Positions 8,010 through 51,086 of a stretch of DNA of 64,000 nucleotides are shown here, in pieces. The notes beneath the pieces are model-generated. The model saw only the letters and a program-made list of their open reading frames with translations, had not been told where the DNA came from and did no database searches. Numbering within the stretch: the first letter of the stretch is position 1; each line of letters begins with the position of its first letter. The DNA lies in the IMG/VR virus record IMGVR_UViG_3300040801_004532, positions 62,001-126,000 of that record. One strand, given 5' to 3'. Made by a program: the position numbers and the translations under genes.

Positions 8010-8029
8010 TTTCATTAAAGGAGTATAGA

Positions 8030-8290
8030 ATGAAAATCAAAGCTGGAATGTTGGTGATTCCAATTTCTTTAGAAAAAACAAGACGTAAATATGGGTCAGC
8101 TCCAGGGATGCAAAGAGCTATTAACCAAAAGAAAAAACTAAAGGTTCAATCCCCAAAATATGAATATGAGGAAGCGGACCTAATAAAGGCCGGTGGATGG
8201 TATTGGGATCCAAAGGATCTCCAGGTAATAATAACAAAGAAACAAGTCCACAAGCCGATTCATTTCTCTCCAGAAATGCTAATGGAGTAA
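8030..8290 (+). CDS. small SH3/KOW-like protein, C-terminal FxxxxL motif family
   Basis: AAGGAG SD; MKIKAGMLVIP...FSPEMLME. Confidence 0.65.
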   Translation: MKIKAGMLVIPISLEKTRRKYGSAPGMQRAINQKKKLKVQSPKYEYEEADLIKAGGWYWDPKDLQVIITKKQVHKPIHFSPEMLME

Positions 8291-8293
8291 AAC

Positions 8294-8803
8294 ATGGATA
8301 AGAAAAAGGAACAAAAACTTTTAGAAGAGTTTCCAGATATATTCAGGGATTATTATGAAAAAGATATAACCCAAAGTTGTATGCCTTGGGGCATTTGCTG
8401 TGGTAATGGGTGGTATGATTTACTACGCCTTCTCTGTCTTGAAATTACGATATTAAGTAGAGATAAGAACATACAGGTAATAGCAGATCAAGTCAAAGAG
8501 AAATTTGGCGGATTGAGATTTTATTTTCATATTAAAAATCCATCTGCCAGTAAATTTTGGTGGGTGTTAAGAGAATTTTTTTATAAATGCAGATTAGGAA
8601 GACAATATAATTTCATACTCGATTTAAGAAGGAAATTCTGGAGATCAACAGAAGAAAAGATATTTGATATTGTCATGAAAGCAGAACAAGACTCATATAA
8701 AATATGTGAACAGTGTGGCCAACCAGGTAAAACAAGAGGTGGTGGTTGGGTCAGAACACTTTGCGAAAAATGTGAAAAAGATTACAAAAAAGATTACATA
8801 TGA
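8294..8803 (+). CDS. hypothetical phage protein
   Basis: CGNGWY...QVKEKFGGLRFY...CEQCG...TLCEKC. Confidence 0.7.
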   Translation: MDKKKEQKLLEEFPDIFRDYYEKDITQSCMPWGICCGNGWYDLLRLLCLEITILSRDKNIQVIADQVKEKFGGLRFYFHIKNPSASKFWWVLREFFYKCRLGRQYNFILDLRRKFWRSTEEKIFDIVMKAEQDSYKICEQCGQPGKTRGGGWVRTLCEKCEKDYKKDYI

Positions 8804-8878
8804 CCCCGTAGACTAGCGGCCCAGGTCAACAGCCTTTCACGCTGTAGCTCGCGGGTTCGAATCCCGCCGGGGTCACCA
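8802..8878 (+). tRNA. tRNA-Glu(UUC)
   Basis: ACAGC-CT-TTC-AC-GCTGT; complete cloverleaf, ACCA. Confidence 0.95.
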
Positions 8879-8898
8879 ATTTTATTTTAGGAGTAAAA

Positions 8899-9297
8899 GT
8901 GAAACCGAGAATAATTACCACAGAAAATAAAATTGTTTTACATCTTGAAGACCGCATTTTGTCAGTAGGGTTTTCAGATAAAGAAATCGTTATGGAAAAT
9001 ACTGATTTACCTTTGGATTACAAAAAAAGAGTAGAGGAACTAGAAAAGAAATTTTCTGAATCTAAAAAAGAATCTTTAACAAGTCCATGTAAGGATTGTC
9101 TTGTTAAATCATGTTGTAAAGATGAATGTGAATCCCTCTTTCTTTTCTTAAATCATTTAGCAGACTATGTTGGTGATTATACTATTGATGAGATTTTTTA
9201 TGTTAGAAACAATATTTCCCCAAAACTATTTGAATTAGCAATAATTATGAGAAAACGAAACGTTCGAATTGACACTTCGTGTTATGCGCCGCAGTAG
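8899..9297 (+). CDS. hypothetical protein with Cys motif
   Basis: AGGAG SD, GTG start; SPCKDCLVKSCCKDEC; stop lies inside tRNA-Trp. Confidence 0.6.
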   Translation: MKPRIITTENKIVLHLEDRILSVGFSDKEIVMENTDLPLDYKKRVEELEKKFSESKKESLTSPCKDCLVKSCCKDECESLFLFLNHLADYVGDYTIDEIFYVRNNISPKLFELAIIMRKRNVRIDTSCYAPQ

Positions 9298-9373
9298 TCT
9301 TAAACCTGTGTTGGTACCAGGGTTGGGCTCCAAACCCAATGACCAAGGGGTTCGATTCCTCACTGCGGTGCCA
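9288..9373 (+). tRNA. tRNA-Trp(CCA), enlarged D region
   Basis: GCCGCAG/CTGCGGT acceptor, TTGGG-CT-CCA-AA-CCCAA, G-CCA. Confidence 0.8.
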
Positions 9374-9391
9374 TTAGAAAGGTGAAAATAA

Positions 9392-9736
9392 ATGGCGACA
9401 AAACCTGTGGTATTTCCAGAATCATTTGAAAGGGATGTTCAAAACAGATCATTTAGTAGATCAATTGTCTATGCTGATCATCGAGTAAGAAAGGCATTTT
9501 TTGAAGCACTCCCCGCTGGGGCAAGAATACATTCATATATGGCTGATTATATTGTAAGAGACGCTGCCAATAAATGTGGTTATAAAGTAAAGAAAAATCG
9601 AAAGTTAAGGAGCCTTGTTTTAATCAAACCAGAATTTAAAGAACATAAGATGGACGACCATCCATTATTTGATCCAAATATGTTAGAACTGGAAGATTCT
9701 AATGAATCAACCGAAGCGTCTGACAGAGAAAAATAA
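9392..9736 (+). CDS. hypothetical protein
   Basis: ORF track; LFDPNMLELE motif near the C-terminus. Confidence 0.6.
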   Translation: MATKPVVFPESFERDVQNRSFSRSIVYADHRVRKAFFEALPAGARIHSYMADYIVRDAANKCGYKVKKNRKLRSLVLIKPEFKEHKMDDHPLFDPNMLELEDSNESTEASDREK

Positions 9737-9971
9737 AGATATATTTTTCAAACAAAAATTTTTAGATTATGAATTGTGTGTTTATTCAATGAGTTTTTTA
9801 TTTCGTGACGTAAAAAGATTGTCGTTGAAACATAATATTAGTATTTTATATTGTCCGCCGAAATCCTATGGGTATATGGTAAATGGTAGTACGTGTTTTA
9901 TGATTTTACCAACACCATTGCCAAAACAAAAGAAAATCCATATGTTCAATATAAATGAATTAATAACTTAG
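9702..9971 (+). CDS. hypothetical protein
   Basis: ORF track; ends MFNINELIT. Confidence 0.55.
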   Translation: MNQPKRLTEKNKDIFFKQKFLDYELCVYSMSFLFRDVKRLSLKHNISILYCPPKSYGYMVNGSTCFMILPTPLPKQKKIHMFNINELIT

Positions 9972-9974
9972 TAT

Positions 9975-10053
9975 GGTCGCGTAGTGAAGTCGGGTCGATC
10001 ACGCCGCCCTGTCAAGGCGGAGAACACGGGTTCAAATCCCGTCGCGACCGCCA
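9975..10053 (+). tRNA. tRNA-Asp(GUC)
   Basis: CCGCC-CT-GTC-AA-GGCGG; G-CCA. Confidence 0.95.
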
Positions 10054-10063
10054 TTTTTATAGT

Positions 10064-10139
10064 GGGCCGGTAGTTCAACTGGGAGAACGGCGCCCCTGCA
10101 CGGCGAAGGTTGAGGGTTCGAGTCCCTTCTGGTCCACCA
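10064..10139 (+). tRNA. tRNA-Ala(UGC)
   Basis: G3.U70 in GGGCCGG/CTGGTCC; loop CC-TGC-AC (C33). Confidence 0.9.
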
Positions 10140-10161
10140 ATTTAAAATAAAGGAAAATCTA

Positions 10162-10545
10162 GTGAATCTCAGAGAAGTACCACAAACACTTGACTCATTT
10201 AAACAAATTATCCTGAATTATAGCTTTTATGATATAATCGAAGGGGGATTTTTTGATAATCGAAAAGGTTATCCAAACCCCCCCAGATTAAGTATCTGTC
10301 CAACGTGTGGATCAAAATATAAGGATCCTGTAAAAAAAGCAAGGTTTGATAGACAACGCAAAGAATATAACGAAGAACAAGCGCGAGTTGAAAAATTATT
10401 CAAAGAAGCTCTATATCATTATTTTAGAATTAGTGACCATCCAAAAGCAAATGATGTATTTTGGCTAGCCTGGCAAAAAGGGCACTCCTCAGGTTTAACT
10501 GAGGTTTATAATGAATGTTGCGACCTTGTAGAACTTATAAAATAA
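10162..10545 (+). CDS. hypothetical phage protein
   Basis: AAGGA SD, GTG start; AWQKGHSSG motif. Confidence 0.65.
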   Translation: MNLREVPQTLDSFKQIILNYSFYDIIEGGFFDNRKGYPNPPRLSICPTCGSKYKDPVKKARFDRQRKEYNEEQARVEKLFKEALYHYFRISDHPKANDVFWLAWQKGHSSGLTEVYNECCDLVELIK

Positions 10546-10556
10546 AGGATACTCGA

Positions 10557-10982
10557 ATGAAAGAAAAAGACGAGTTAAAAAGAAATAAAAAATTTATGGT
10601 GTCGATTATTGCGTGGCCCATAATAACATTAACATTACTAATGTTATTGATTCTCTTGTTTACATCAGGAGTAGAATTAAAGACAAAATACTTTATTGGA
10701 TCTTTTGGGGTATTCTTCTGTCTAGGATTTGGATGGATAACATATCTTGAATATACAGTTGGTAAAGCATATTATAGAATATATTATCGTCCAATTGATA
10801 AATTCATAGTTAAAGAATATTCAAACTTTATGGCCTTGGTTGATTCAAATAATTTTGCACATGTATATAGAGAACAATCAGTAAGAGAAAAAATTAGAAA
10901 ATTAGAAAAAATTAAAATTTATCAATATTATACACTCAAAAAGAAAACAATTTCATATGAACTTGCCATACACGAACAGTAA
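10557..10982 (+). CDS. hypothetical membrane protein
   Basis: two TM segments; AAGGA SD. Confidence 0.6.
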   Translation: MKEKDELKRNKKFMVSIIAWPIITLTLLMLLILLFTSGVELKTKYFIGSFGVFFCLGFGWITYLEYTVGKAYYRIYYRPIDKFIVKEYSNFMALVDSNNFAHVYREQSVREKIRKLEKIKIYQYYTLKKKTISYELAIHEQ

Positions 10983-10987
10983 TAGAT

Positions 10988-11084
10988 GGGAGTGTAGCTC
11001 AATTAGGTAGAGCAGCCGACTTATGATCGGTATTTGCGCCGGATTAGCGCGAGGTTCGGGGTTCGATTCCCTGCACTCCTACCA
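10988..11084 (+). tRNA. tRNA-Ile(UAU) with long variable arm (97 nt)
   Basis: GGGAGTG/CACTCCT, GCCGA-CT-TAT-GA-TCGGT, extra GCGC-CGGATTA-GCGC hairpin, A-CCA. Confidence 0.8.
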
Positions 11085-11102
11085 AAACACAAAGGAAATC
11101 AA

Positions 11103-11402
11103 ATGGTCCAAAGAAAGAAATGGAAGGGATTCAGATTAGGACAAAAAGTAAAATTAAAGCATGGCATTCCCCATACTAGAAGCCATGGATGGCAAAGCCC
11201 AGATACTGCAAAAAAGCTTTTCGGGCAAACTATAACTGTCATTGATTTTCACTCTTCTGTTCCCGAGGCAATTAGGGTAGAAGGTAAAGTTCGGGGTGCT
11301 CCTTATGCTCGTTATTTTCATTATAAAGATTTAATAAAAGCTTGCGCGGTTAAAAGAAATTTGGATCCTGTTACCTTTAATCCAGAAGAATTGGAACTAT
11401 AA
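11103..11402 (+). CDS. SH3/KOW-like protein, FxxxxL(E/D) family
   Basis: FRLGQKVKLK...TFNPEELEL; AAGGA SD. Confidence 0.65.
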   Translation: MVQRKKWKGFRLGQKVKLKHGIPHTRSHGWQSPDTAKKLFGQTITVIDFHSSVPEAIRVEGKVRGAPYARYFHYKDLIKACAVKRNLDPVTFNPEELEL

Positions 11403-11406
11403 ACAC

Positions 11407-11482
11407 TGGCACGTAGCTCAGAAGGCAGAGCGGGTGGCTGTTAACCACCAAGTCGTAGGTTCGATCCCTACCGTGCCAGCCA
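11407..11482 (+). tRNA. tRNA-Asn(GUU) copy 1
   Basis: GGTGG-CT-GTT-AA-CCACC; G-CCA. Confidence 0.95.
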
Positions 11483-11498
11483 ATAAGAAAGGGTTGAA

Positions 11499-11789
11499 AT
11501 GACTGAAAATTCAAGAAATGATTTGAATATCGGAAGTAAGATTAAGGTTCATAAGGAAGTGCCTTATACAATACAAAAGGGTTGGCACTCAAGAATGGGC
11601 GATGTATTTTTAAATAAGACTGGAACCGTTGTTTCATTTCATCCTCATATCAGCGAAGCAGTAAGAATTAGAGCAAAAATAGATAATGAGTATAAGGAAC
11701 GATTTTTCCACTATAAAGATCTAAAAAAATTAGAAATAATAAGAAAATCAACCTCCGTTACTTTTAATCCAAAAGAATTAGAGATATAA
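11499..11789 (+). CDS. SH3/KOW-like protein, paralog of 11103..11402
   Basis: IGSKIKVH...FHYKDL...TFNPKELEI. Confidence 0.7.
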   Translation: MTENSRNDLNIGSKIKVHKEVPYTIQKGWHSRMGDVFLNKTGTVVSFHPHISEAVRIRAKIDNEYKERFFHYKDLKKLEIIRKSTSVTFNPKELEI

Positions 11790-11796
11790 CTATTAC

Positions 11797-11871
11797 TGGC
11801 GTGTAGCTCAGAGGCAGAGCTGGTGGCTGTTAACCACCGAGTCGCAGGTTCGATCCCTGCCATGCCAGCCA
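11797..11871 (+). tRNA. tRNA-Asn(GUU) copy 2
   Basis: near-identical to copy 1. Confidence 0.95.
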
Positions 11872-11906
11872 TATCAAAAAATTTTGTTTAATGAAGGGAG
11901 CCTATA

Positions 11907-12158
11907 GTGAATTTTAAAATAGGAAGTATGGTACGAATCTCTAATGGCGATTGTCGAGAAACAAAAGAAAGATTTTCAATGCCACATCCAATGCCCATGA
12001 TGAGAGGTAAGGTTTACAAGGTTGAAAATTGTCAACCTAATGACAATGTTACTTTAAAAAGTTATACTTGGGATATAAGAGATGTATTCCCCGCTGAAAA
12101 TGAACAAAAAAAATTCCCAGAACCCAAACTGTTCAATATAGACGAATTAGAAATATAA
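11907..12158 (+). CDS. SH3/KOW-like protein
   Basis: FKIGSMVRI...LFNIDELEI; GGAG SD, GTG start. Confidence 0.65.
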   Translation: MNFKIGSMVRISNGDCRETKERFSMPHPMPMMRGKVYKVENCQPNDNVTLKSYTWDIRDVFPAENEQKKFPEPKLFNIDELEI

Positions 12159-12171
12159 CAAGGAGAAATTA

Positions 12172-12462
12172 ATGCGAGAATTTAAGGCGAATCAATTAGT
12201 AAGGATAACAAAAGATTTAAAAGAATCGCAAACTGACTACACATTTGGCTTAGACGGTAATGGTATAATGTTATCAATGCAAGGAAAAGTTTTCAAAATA
12301 AACAAGCTTGGTGGCAATTTTAACAAGGGGGGAATATGGATAAAAAACCCCATTAACGATAACATATATATTTTTCATGAATCGGATCTAAAACTAGTTT
12401 CAACTAAACCAAAAATAAAAAAAGAAAAGCACGTTTTTGACTCAAACCAATTGGATTTTTAA
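12172..12462 (+). CDS. SH3/KOW-like protein
   Basis: FKANQLVRI...FHESDL...VFDSNQLDF; AGGAG SD. Confidence 0.65.
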   Translation: MREFKANQLVRITKDLKESQTDYTFGLDGNGIMLSMQGKVFKINKLGGNFNKGGIWIKNPINDNIYIFHESDLKLVSTKPKIKKEKHVFDSNQLDF

Positions 12463-12477
12463 GAACAAAATATAAAT

Positions 12478-12505
12478 AGCGGCTTAGCTCAGAGGTAGAG
12501 CATCT
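12478..12505 (+). pseudogene. tRNA 5' fragment (acceptor 5' strand plus D arm)
   Basis: AGCGGCT-TA-GCTC-AGAGGTA-GAGC-A, then abrupt loss of tRNA pattern before the HNH ORF. Confidence 0.7.
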
Positions 12506-12521
12506 AATAAGGAATTTCAAA

Positions 12522-13166
12522 ATGATATGTGAATGGTGTAAAGAAGAACATGATGGTAACTATGGGTCAGGAAGATTCTGTTCTAAATCTTGTTCAAAAA
12601 AATATGCTTCAAATATTAATTCCAAACAAAAAGGAATAAAAATATCTAAAGCAATGAAAAATAGATGGAAAAATGGTGGTCATATCCAAGATAGAAAAAA
12701 ATTAAAATTAATGATTAAAAAAGCAGCTAAGATTAAAAAGTTAAGAAGACAGACCTTACTAGAACATGGGGAATGGAAAGATTTGCCCTTAACTCTTAAG
12801 AAAAAAAGAGTATTAAAAGAGCAAAATGGCAAATGCTCAATATGTGGTATAAAAAGTTGGAATGAGAAACCTTTAATTTTACACTTCGATCATATAGATG
12901 GAAACAACAAAAACATTGACAGAAAAAATGTAAGATTTATTTGCCCAAATTGTCACAGTCAGACAGAAACTTACTGTGGAAACAAACAGAAATTACCACA
13001 ATTTGAGTATCTTAAAACCACAAAAGAAAATTTAAAGCTCCGTAGCTCAATAGGTTCAGAGCGCAGGACCGATAATCCTGAGGTTGTGGGTTCAATTCCC
13101 TCCGGAGCTACCACAAAATTCTTAAAGGAGTTTTTATGCCTGAGAATTACGAAGAATGTGAAATAA
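12522..13166 (+). CDS. HNH homing endonuclease (free-standing)
   Basis: CSICG...LHFDHIDGNNKN...RFICPNCHSQT; reading frame runs through tRNA-Ile(GAU). Confidence 0.85.
   Translation: MICEWCKEEHDGNYGSGRFCSKSCSKKYASNINSKQKGIKISKAMKNRWKNGGHIQDRKKLKLMIKKAAKIKKLRRQTLLEHGEWKDLPLTLKKKRVLKEQNGKCSICGIKSWNEKPLILHFDHIDGNNKNIDRKNVRFICPNCHSQTETYCGNKQKLPQFEYLKTTKENLKLRSSIGSERRTDNPEVVGSIPSGATTKFLKEFLCLRITKNVK
13036..13113 (+). tRNA. tRNA-Ile(GAU)
   Basis: AGCTCCG/CGGAGCT, CAGGA-CC-GAT-AA-TCCTG (C33), ACCA. Confidence 0.9.
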
Positions 13167-50036: not shown

Positions 50037-51086
50037 TTATTTGCCCATCCCTTTAACGTCTGCAATAGTGCGAATTAAAAGACCATTTGCAACCGTTGTT
50101 AATGGATTTTTAGCACGTCTAATCTCTGAAACCTCAAATGGCAACTCGTGTGTTGAAATGACATTTTTAAACAACTCAACAAAACCCTCTGGAATACTTG
50201 TCCCGCCAGAAACAACAATTGGAATCTTATCATCTATTTCAATATCAACTTTTTCATCAAACTCTTTGATAATTCGTTTTACAGTATAGTCAATCAGGGC
50301 TTTATGATAATAGAAAAGAGCTTCCAAAACCCTCTTAGTTTTCTTATTTTTAACTTCAACATCACCAGATAATTTCATATATTTCTCTTTCAAATTTGTA
50401 ACCCTATTTGGAACCATTGCTAAATCTGCCGCAACCTGTTGATCAATCCAATCGCCAGCTCGAGCGGTTGAGAATTTTAATGCTTCAACGCCCTTATATG
50501 AAATTGCTATATTGGCCATACCAGCACCAAAGCTAATTCCAATCCCACTAAAGTTCTCTTTGGCACATTCAGAATAAATAATCGCCATCGCCTCATTGAC
50601 AGATGTATGATTAACACCCAAACGATTAAGAATTCTTGCAAAAACATTTTCATGATATGTAACAGAACGTCCCTCGTCAATCGCTTCAGCGGGTACCGAA
50701 TACGAACAATAAACCTCTTTATCTTTGGTCTCTCCAATTAGTTCCTTTAGCATCAATGTCAAAACATCAATTGCAGCAATTTCTTTTGGAGAGATAAGTC
50801 CTTTTTCCATAGGTCGAGAAATACTTGTGCCAAAAATATTCGCAAACTCAAATGCGTCAGAACCAATAATAAATAACTCTCCATCATCGCTTTCAACATA
50901 ACTAATATTACTTAGTTGGTTGAGCGAGACATCATCCTTCTCTACTTTAAGAAATACATTCCTTGTAATATTAACATCATCTGAGTCAGAACTTGCACAT
51001 ACCAGATGCATTGTTCCGACATCAAGCCCCAAACATTTAACTTTACTATGTTTTTTCATTTCTTTGTTATTGTTTTCTTCGTTCAT
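50037..51086 (-). CDS. actin-like ATPase (MreB/ParM/MamK superfamily)
   Basis: LGLDVGT (phosphate 1), NEAMA, ISFGAGM (phosphate 2), VVSGGTS (adenosine). Confidence 0.8.
   Translation of the reverse strand: MNEENNNKEMKKHSKVKCLGLDVGTMHLVCASSDSDDVNITRNVFLKVEKDDVSLNQLSNISYVESDDGELFIIGSDAFEFANIFGTSISRPMEKGLISPKEIAAIDVLTLMLKELIGETKDKEVYCSYSVPAEAIDEGRSVTYHENVFARILNRLGVNHTSVNEAMAIIYSECAKENFSGIGISFGAGMANIAISYKGVEALKFSTARAGDWIDQQVAADLAMVPNRVTNLKEKYMKLSGDVEVKNKKTKRVLEALFYYHKALIDYTVKRIIKEFDEKVDIEIDDKIPIVVSGGTSIPEGFVELFKNVISTHELPFEVSEIRRAKNPLTTVANGLLIRTIADVKGMGK

Follow-up and report, generated by a model that had tools for sequence, protein, structure and literature searches.

The stretch analyzed here (the window) comprises 64,000 nucleotides (nt), bases 62001-126000 of the linear, 248,136-bp virus record IMGVR_UViG_3300040801_004532 in IMG/VR (CheckV completeness 79%), and its first 21 kb form a plus-strand island that harbors 18 transfer RNA (tRNA) genes and a transfer-messenger RNA (tmRNA) gene according to ARAGORN and Rfam. 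Five small open reading frames (ORFs) of this island are members of family 1, as we call a protein family of about 113 clusters that lacks annotation and combines an SH3_15-like barrel, a linker and a short C-terminal tail. The tail repeats the barrel's own closing signature ('FNPAVL' in Mind bomb protein MIB1), and it also looks modular, as it is found on at least two body families that have no detectable sequence relation. We tentatively favor, at a probability of roughly 40%, the interpretation that the tail, held on its tether, docks its carriers to a single partner common to all of them.

Family 1 was delineated with a profile of the five ORFs, which retrieved 135 proteins at E <= 1e-3 from 1.84 billion cluster representatives; about 113 of these are foreign to this genome, measure 78-140 amino acids (aa) and display the same architecture. 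A hidden Markov model (HMM) built from the 113 foreign relatives recognized all five core ORFs, which cover almost the entire model (E 6e-13 to 1e-21), and no further member in this genome, confirming the earlier proposal that the ORFs beginning with xKxGxxVxI are one family. Divergence within the family is pronounced: across the full alignment, columns average 17% identity, and BLAST among the five ORFs without their tails detected only the pairs B and C (E 7e-16) and D and E (E 1e-3; members are lettered in gene order). Searches with Pfam and PHROGs gave nothing significant for the seven tail-bearing ORFs described below, and the five core ORFs lacked a Pfam match even at E <= 1. Among GenBank phages, blastn returned only tRNA matches and tblastn with a family member returned none, while a word search with member C retrieved only C itself. 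A body-only word search scored just 62 candidates and is uninformative on tail-less relatives. Scanning IMG/VR for related loci with a subfamily gave 14 pattern matches, none of which was real.

The tail was first described in an earlier note, which had been made from the letters of the window and listed seven ORFs ending in or near an F-x4-L-(E/D) motif; all seven were found with the tail strings and at the positions given there. The regular expression F[NDS]..[EQM]L, picked after the data had been seen, occurs 17 times in the 340 predicted proteins of the genome (76.5 k residues; genes called by codon-usage score), with 7 occurrences in the last 10 residues versus 0.23 expected. Since this pattern was chosen post hoc, we built an independent tail matrix of 12 columns from 112 family-1 relatives, none of them from this genome. 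Scanned with this matrix, the five core ORFs scored 15.1-23.4 bits and a sixth, ORF 9702-9971, 20.0 bits, all with the Phe of the motif at position -8 from the C-terminus; the maximum in reversed or shuffled proteomes was 10-16 bits. The shared tail is far beyond chance, and the earlier observation is confirmed. A protein of 180 aa encoded near the gene for the family-B DNA polymerase (PolB) ends in HFSTIELQ and was discarded as a candidate, having no score with the independent matrix. Tail codons vary synonymously between the copies (TTT/TTC; TTA/TTG/CTA; GAA/GAG), which shows that conservation acts on the protein. A function of the tail at the DNA level, such as a promoter or processing site, was rejected on account of these synonymous differences and of the lack of enrichment of promoter- or terminator-like sites. 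A degenerate DNA pattern of the tail plus TAA, run over IMG/VR, gave 10 matches that all lie in stop-to-stop frames of 11-33 codons and were dismissed as chance.

The seven ORFs all lie on the plus strand, and their interleaving with tRNA genes, as previously proposed, is upheld by the ARAGORN and Rfam calls. Member A (8030-8290, 86 aa) terminates in FSPEMLME (codons 8264-8287) and has an HMM E value of 5.8e-13 over positions 7-92 and a tail score of 15.6 bits, with Phe at -8; a GGAG resembling a ribosome-binding site upstream of the ATG at 8030 supports its start. Member B (11103-11402, 99 aa; E 4.4e-15) ends in FNPEELEL (11376-11399; 23.4 bits), with its stop 5 nt upstream of the first tRNA-Asn, and member C (11499-11789, 96 aa; E 9.3e-16) in FNPKELEI (11763-11786; 22.7 bits), with its stop 8 nt upstream of the second tRNA-Asn. 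They are followed by member D (11907-12158, 83 aa, GTG start; E 1.3e-21), which carries FNIDELEI (12132-12155; 21.1 bits), and by member E (12172-12462, 96 aa; E 3.1e-21) with FDSNQLDF (12436-12459; 15.1 bits). Both A and B start internally in a longer ORF, at 8030 and 11103, respectively, and the 5' portion of each longer ORF overlaps DNA that is tRNA or resembles it; for A, the longest ORF (7787-8290) is misleading because of the tRNA-like DNA at 7783-8009. The two remaining ORFs have other bodies. ORF 9702-9971 (89 aa) ends in FNINELIT (9945-9968; Phe at -8), has a low coding score, and its stop lies 4 nt upstream of tRNA-Asp; we refer to it as the family-2 member. ORF 9392-9736 (114 aa; coding score 27) contains an internal FDPNMLEL(E) at 9668-9691, with the Phe 22 residues from the end and a 13-residue acidic extension following FDPNMLEL.

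AlphaFold2 (AF2) modeled member C with a predicted local distance difference test (pLDDT) value of 82.8 from 5 alignment rows and 91.2 from 117 rows, residues 5-78 forming an SH3-like barrel. In an exhaustive structure comparison (VIA-align), MIB1 REP ranked first (4xi6, Z 11.2, root-mean-square deviation 1.5 A over 67 residues; 4tse, Z 10.3), with L21e (Z 9.3 and 8.9) close behind and the NusG KOW domain (Z 8.4) after it, so that the original guess of a KOW/SH3-like body proved correct at the fold level, with the Mind bomb REP/SH3_15 structure being the nearest. The family-1 profile also matches MIB1 REP by sequence (E 3.3e-4), PF18346 (SH3_15) matches 6 of 117 relatives at E < 0.01, and the long multi-repeat matches of the profile search carry SH3_15 together with RING fingers; none of the window's five ORFs reaches the Pfam gathering score of PF18346, and the sequence relation emerges at profile level alone. 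A structure search of the ESM Atlas with member E returned MIB-type E3 ligases (TM 0.61-0.66), and Foldseek returned BFVD phage proteins and YorP (E 3e-3 to 3e-2). The family-1 body is hence a remote branch of the SH3_15 (Mib repeat) fold that consists of one domain and is borne by phages. The AF2 model of C is a five-stranded SH3-like barrel superposable on MIB1 REP, and both share the conserved layout GxxVxI ... M..M.GK..V ... W.F[HN]P..L as well as the closing signature, for which the body columns read [YWF]-x-[FW]-[HD]-[PI]-x-D-[LIV] and HMMER aligns 'RWTFNPAVL' of MIB1. The phage proteins differ in being single-domain proteins of 80-100 aa that lack the RING, ankyrin and MZM parts, and in adding a linker and a second closing signature, whereas the MIB1 repeats have no such free tail. 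YorP, DUF4314 and KOW-domain phage proteins adopt the same general barrel as family 1, but have no sequence relationship to it and do not share the tail.

The eight-residue consensus of the tail is F-[DN]-[PIV]-x-[NEQD]-L-x-[IVL]. Across the 112 relatives, the Phe (column 0) is present in 97%, D/N at +1 in 99% and L/I at +5 in 99%; P occupies +2 in 56%, otherwise I/V/T, column +3 accepts any residue, +4 is N/E/Q/D, +6 D or variable and +7 I/V/L, while upstream of the Phe K/E/Q prevails at -4, P at -3 and V/F/I at -2, with any residue at -1. The Phe is located eight residues from the end in 76 of the 112 relatives and 9-14 residues from the end in 23, and extensions of 4-6 residues past the tail occur in the related contigs L015 and L035. 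Such tolerated extensions indicate a linear motif for which a fixed free carboxylate is not required. A K/P/I/E-rich linker connects the final strand of the barrel to the tail. In a profile-versus-profile comparison, the tail matched the barrel's closing window best among 71 non-overlapping windows (10.99 bits; next 1.37; z 3.2). The resemblance is evident on aligning the end of the body, [YWF]-x-[FW]-[HD]-[PI]-x-D-[LIV]-x-[PLI]-[VIL], with the tail, [VFI]-x-F-[DN]-[PIV]-x-[NEQD]-[LI]-x-[IVL], and AF2 predicts for both the same short turn, that of the barrel's beta4-3(10)-beta5 region. That the tail is a large metagenomic family's common trait and a copy of the domain's closing signature had escaped the earlier note.

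The previous claim that the tail is modular, sitting on two unrelated bodies besides the SH3-like one, held in part. With its tail removed, the body of 9702-9971 matches L034:8410-8715 (E 1.4e-6) and L035:9387-9668 (E 2.4e-5), genes of two related contigs whose tail-less bodies also match each other (E 2e-10); despite its low coding score, the ORF is thus a genuine, conserved gene. All three family-2 genes occupy the same part of the island, from tRNA-Trp to tRNA-Asp/Ala, and all three carry the tail with Phe at -8. A profile-profile comparison (hhalign) of the family-2 and family-1 bodies detected no relation (probability 0.14%). This part of the claim therefore stands: the tail is a discrete unit behind a low-complexity linker, better conserved than the bodies, and the same tail on a family-2 body without detectable relation to family 1 is what makes it look modular. 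ORF 9392-9736, in contrast, is a singleton that lacks a counterpart at the corresponding position of L034, and its motif does not reach significance with the independent matrix. A further carrier was found outside the window by the matrix scan, namely a 58-aa ORF (genome 199677-199853; 20.4 bits, Phe at -8) that overlaps the stop codon of a gene for an RNA polymerase (RNAP) beta-like subunit, matches only the linker and tail of family 1 and is missing at the corresponding place in G001, a related genome. Barrel remnants 5' of two tail-only ORFs were sought in all frames and none was found. Overall, the earlier interpretation is partly supported.

The units [B + tRNA-Asn] and [C + tRNA-Asn] are the two copies of a tandemly duplicated segment of about 390 bp, in which DNA identity amounts to 47% in the body and 45% in the linker, but to 78% in the barrel signature, 78-85% in the tail and 88-92% in tRNA-Asn. 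Within this duplicate, protein conservation is limited to the two copies of the signature, with the linker between them being free to change. L034 (34 kb) and L035 (17 kb) have the tRNA order, the amber-suppressor-like tRNA and the tmRNA as in the window, with family-1 genes in the spacers; L003 (5.8 kb) accommodates seven consecutive members between five tRNA genes, one further contig contains about nine consecutive genes of 85-98 aa, and in G002 a single family member follows immediately 3' of tRNA-Ser. A natural fusion of two barrels (L003:3041-3571) has a decayed internal tail that lost its Leu. G001 (244 kb; PolB 54% identical) likewise possesses a tRNA island and a tmRNA gene, yet family 1 and the tail are both absent from it, from which we conclude that family 1 is accessory and that tail and family come and go together. 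At variable positions, tails are more alike within than between genomes (BLOSUM62 per column 1.29 vs 0.35; permutation p 2e-4). In L034 and in L035, the family-2 tail clearly resembles the family-1 tails of the same genome most, whereas the family-2 tail of the genome studied here does not follow this pattern.

According to the interpretation we favor, the tail would be a portable short linear motif, held on a K/P/E-rich tether of 13-16 residues at the C-terminus of small accessory proteins whose genes a clade of huge sediment phages carries in its tRNA/tmRNA island. The family-1 barrels would multiply by local duplication, at times together with a neighboring tRNA gene, and then diverge fast while the tail is retained. 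By docking all its carriers onto one common partner, the tail would gather diversified small 'heads' at the same place. The partner may be a host or phage hub or the family's own barrels; as the tail copies the closing segment, which packs on the barrel, a Phe/Leu turn of that kind is probably what the surface of the partner accepts. Binding in trans, the singleness of the partner and an early or accessory role are steps that we infer. In favor of docking count the conservation of the tail in the 112 relatives, its matrix scores, the family-2 and 58-aa carriers, its retention in the B/C duplicate, the tolerated C-terminal extensions, the likeness of tails within a genome and the joint absence of tail and family 1 from G001. 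Several findings weigh against this docking model. No binding partner of the tail was found, and none of the sequencing runs that contain the region is an RNA run. Family 2 could be a family-1 relative diverged past detection, in which case its tail would be inherited rather than modular. The two singleton carriers, ORF 9392-9736 and the 58-aa ORF, come without conservation support, and the internal motif of the former reaches only 5.4 bits with the independent matrix, which is not significant alone. The similarity of tails within a genome is largely explained by recent duplication, and the cross-family pairing of tails rests on three genomes, the true pairing being the best of only 6 permutations. 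Three further features would be expected if the tail packed onto the barrel of its own protein: AF2 assigns pLDDT values of 83 to the tail and 76 to the linker with 117 rows (62-65 with 5 rows), linker length is confined to 13-16 residues in 100 of 117 members, and tail positions 92 and 95 covary weakly with N-terminal positions 8 and 11.

These last features are also what lends weight to a purely structural explanation, which we consider possible, albeit doubtful. Here, the tail would fold onto its own barrel as a cap or extra turn-strand that serves folding or stability and was passed on by descent as a family trait, family 2 would be a very diverged relative, and the singletons would be decayed or chance occurrences. 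Such a role would be in line with the tail profile matching the barrel's own beta4-3(10)-beta5 signature ('WTFNPAVL' in MIB1), with the common turn that AF2 gives for both copies, with the confidence of the tail prediction once the alignment is deep, and with the loss of the Leu from the internal tail of the L003 fusion. It is at odds with the family-2 body, which shows the tail at -8 in three phages despite having no detectable relation to family 1, with the 58-aa ORF, which is linker plus tail and has no barrel, and with the freedom of the linker to change in the B/C duplicate at 45% DNA identity next to a tail at 78-85%. Nor do the matching third positions of tail and barrel signature covary (Fisher p 0.57), as coupling would have it, and in the 5-row AF2 model the tail is not confidently placed.

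A more elaborate version of docking, which seems unlikely to us, is that of a self-derived 'address peptide': a freed SH3_15 closing segment that has spread among unrelated island genes by short-patch recombination and brings fast-diversifying adaptors to one conserved target, plausibly the host translation/tRNA machinery. This target is suggested by the gene content of the islands, with a tmRNA and a YqeY-like protein in the window and RtcB plus PTH2 in related phages. As to the mode of spreading, the family-2 tail DNA (9943-9962) is identical in 18 of 20 nt to the tail DNA of member D (12130-12149), which hints at short-patch exchange or shared constraint. If this idea were true, the system would be a phage counterpart of F-box or SOCS-box logic.

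Still less probable in our view is that the tail, be it of family 1, family 2 or a tail-only ORF, acts as a trans ligand of the family's barrels and plugs into the SH3_15 barrel, a peptide-binding module, of another protein, so that mixed assemblies of paralogues are built. The tail does mimic a segment that packs on the barrel, many paralogues reside together (5 in this genome, 7 in L003), tails are alike within a genome, and other tail-bearing proteins were seen only in genomes with family 1, G001 lacking both. However, the complete barrel offers no obvious free site for a second closing segment, and the co-occurrence is based on very few genomes. We regard as very improbable that the tail directs its carriers to the virion or another phage compartment and, like the T4 capsid-targeting sequence or encapsulin cargo peptides but at the C-terminus, loads effectors for injection. 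The variable cargo, flexible linker and conserved terminal peptide, as well as the multi-copy, fast-diverging set of small proteins, would suit such a role, but the genes lie among small accessory genes in the strand block of the tRNA/tmRNA island, far from any recognized structural gene, and no structural protein of the genome carries a related motif in the tail-matrix scan.

Comparison with known docking systems places the tail in none of them. The clamp-binding tails of T4 gp43, gp55 and gp33 are likewise short hydrophobic/acidic C-terminal motifs on otherwise unrelated proteins that dock to a hub, gp45; gp33 links RNAP to the clamp. The likeness extends to the genome studied here having a T4-type clamp loader (phrog_168 match, E 2e-57) and to the tail-only 58-aa ORF lying directly after the RNAP beta-like gene. 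Read directly, the T4 tails are ...ASLDFLFG (gp43) and ...SLDFLYEAND (gp55), and their motif SLDFL[FY] is unlike F-[DN]-P-x-N-L of the phage tail. Although the T4 tails are a good functional analogue, the T4-type clamp reading was set aside, as the motif differs, the phage's PolB ends in ...KSELLTI without a tail, and a sliding clamp gene was not found with five models (gp45, beta-clamp, PCNA) in this genome, which is only 79% complete, so that a clamp may still exist; the gene 5' of the clamp loader, encoding a protein of 129-158 aa without a recognized fold, was considered and rejected as a clamp, and a 259-aa neighbor in the same region has no matches. Bacterial beta-clamp-binding peptides follow the consensus QL[SD]LF or QLxLxL. 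The tail lacks both the Gln-Leu start and the terminal Phe, except in member E (QLDF). From PDZ-type and other C-terminal ligands anchored by the carboxylate, the tail differs in having its Phe farther than eight residues from the end in about a fifth of the relatives (23/112), a free end not being needed.

Further likenesses concern architecture or logic. In SspB-type adaptors, a linker that is not conserved joins a small body, which binds substrates, to a short and conserved ClpX-binding peptide at the C-terminus. Family 1 resembles them in this order of body, linker and terminal peptide only; the SspB peptide (LRVVK type) is unlike the phage tail, and a protease link to the tail is not supported. 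The T4 capsid-targeting sequence and the encapsulin peptides are similar in that one short peptide serves as the address label of diverse small proteins, and T4 internal-protein genes adjoin the tRNA cluster. The T4 signal, unlike the tail, is N-terminal and cleaved off, and the sequences are unrelated. The tail thus fits no known motif: it departs from the beta-clamp, T4-clamp and carboxylate-anchored patterns, and membership of the SspB, T4 or encapsulin systems is not supported.

The small ORFs of tRNA/tmRNA islands in huge phages are almost all unannotated, and family 1 now defines one recurrent occupant. Neither Pfam nor PHROGs has an entry for it and GenBank phages gave no match, yet it has a recognizable fold and an unusually well-conserved tail that is common to a second family. 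Duplication of a domain's own closing segment would be a possible route to a linear motif. Should the tail be a docking signal, a single peptide would make many accessory proteins accessible to experiment at once; should it be only a structural cap, the finding would shrink to a new SH3_15 subfamily.

As to the setting, the genome is that of a huge uncultured phage with a G+C content of about 34% in the window; in a sequencing-run search, pieces of the region were found, with small shares, only in freshwater-sediment, sediment and microbial-mat metagenomes. Translation table 11 gives the coding density expected for the genome, an alternative genetic code is thus not needed, and this candidate was dropped. 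Besides PolB and the clamp loader, the genome encodes an ATP-dependent ligase, a ribonucleotide reductase and RNAP beta- and beta'-like subunits, the genes for the latter two being adjacent (beta'-like, 888 aa, and beta-like, 999 aa; L002:4018-9680, corresponding to genome 194018-199680). A string with a loose resemblance to the tail, 'KFIDPNLVDE', occurs in the C-terminal portion of the beta-like protein. On the minus strand of the window, a run of glycosyltransferase (GT) genes (GT1, GT4, GT9) with a UDP-GlcNAc 2-epimerase (E 2e-94) extends over 28500-49100, a sizeable sugar-modification cluster, and an actin-like protein is encoded at 50037-51086 (Volactin Pfam model, E 2e-75), a type that is unusual for a phage.

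Within the island, ARAGORN and Rfam place plus-strand genes for tRNA-Glu at 8802-8878, tRNA-Asp at 9975-10053, tRNA-Ala at 10064-10139, tRNA-Ile(TAT) at 10988-11084 and the two tRNA-Asn at 11407-11482 and 11797-11871. The tRNA-Ile(TAT) gene measures 97 nt versus 75-76 nt in L034, L035 and G001; the difference points to an insert of about 22 nt, which may be a small intron. An odd plus-strand tRNA-like gene with a CCA (Trp?) anticodon loop at about 9292-9378 has an oversized D region; it was missed by ARAGORN and matches the Rfam tRNA-Sec model weakly (34 bits, E 5e-4). At the equivalent position, L034, L035 and L003 have an ordinary tRNA-Trp. A second tRNA-like frame lies in the GC-richer stretch 7783-8009, where 5' GGGGAAA pairs with 3' UUUCCCC-ACCA and, together with a T-arm GUCAG-UUCGAGC-CUGAC, encloses an insert of about 150 nt. 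The frame was called by neither ARAGORN nor Rfam and has a fold z-score of only -1.1; an interrupted tRNA and a tRNA-like RNA are both conceivable.

The tmRNA gene of the window (6211-6561; Rfam 141 bits) specifies the tag ADDYYTEVALAA. Its counterparts lie at L034:6328-6720 (tag ADDYYTEVRLAA), L035:5080-5451 and L024:17325-17699, and the tags seen in relatives are related or different (ADDYYTEVRLAA, ANDYQQEFALAA, ADNLAFAAADDYATAALAA). A tRNA with a CTA anticodon (amber suppressor; labeled 'Pyl' by ARAGORN) is found at 4784-4860 in the window and at L034:5531-5607, L035:4488-4563 and L026:7809-7883; it is kept immediately 5' of the tmRNA in three relatives and is located elsewhere in the island of G001. 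Despite this tRNA, table 11 fits the genome, and many of its genes stop at TAG.

Among the protein genes of the island, 7246-7773 encodes a 175-aa YqeY-like protein (GatB C-terminal, tRNA-associated domain; Pfam E 8e-7), and the islands of relatives contain RtcB and PTH2 (L035:1-752, L034:17353-17739), so that the island holds translation and tRNA-repair functions. Downstream of member E, the stretch 12476-12510 resembles a tRNA 5' half and is identical at 16 of 17 positions to the D-arm of tRNA-Asn at 11804-11820; it is followed by an HNH/endonuclease VII-like ORF (12522-13166) whose 3' end overlaps tRNA-Ile(GAT) at 13036-13113. The segment 12475-13166 may represent a homing endonuclease inserted into the tRNA array. 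Finally, a conserved protein of 128-169 aa (window 8294-8803; L034:7416-7802; L035:7295-7753) with the motifs GDGWY and KEKFGGLRFY and a C-terminal zinc ribbon of the Cys pair type has no Pfam match and is encoded directly 3' of a family-1 gene, separated by a 3-nt gap in the window and overlapping by 4 nt in L034; it is possibly a functional partner of its family-1 neighbor.

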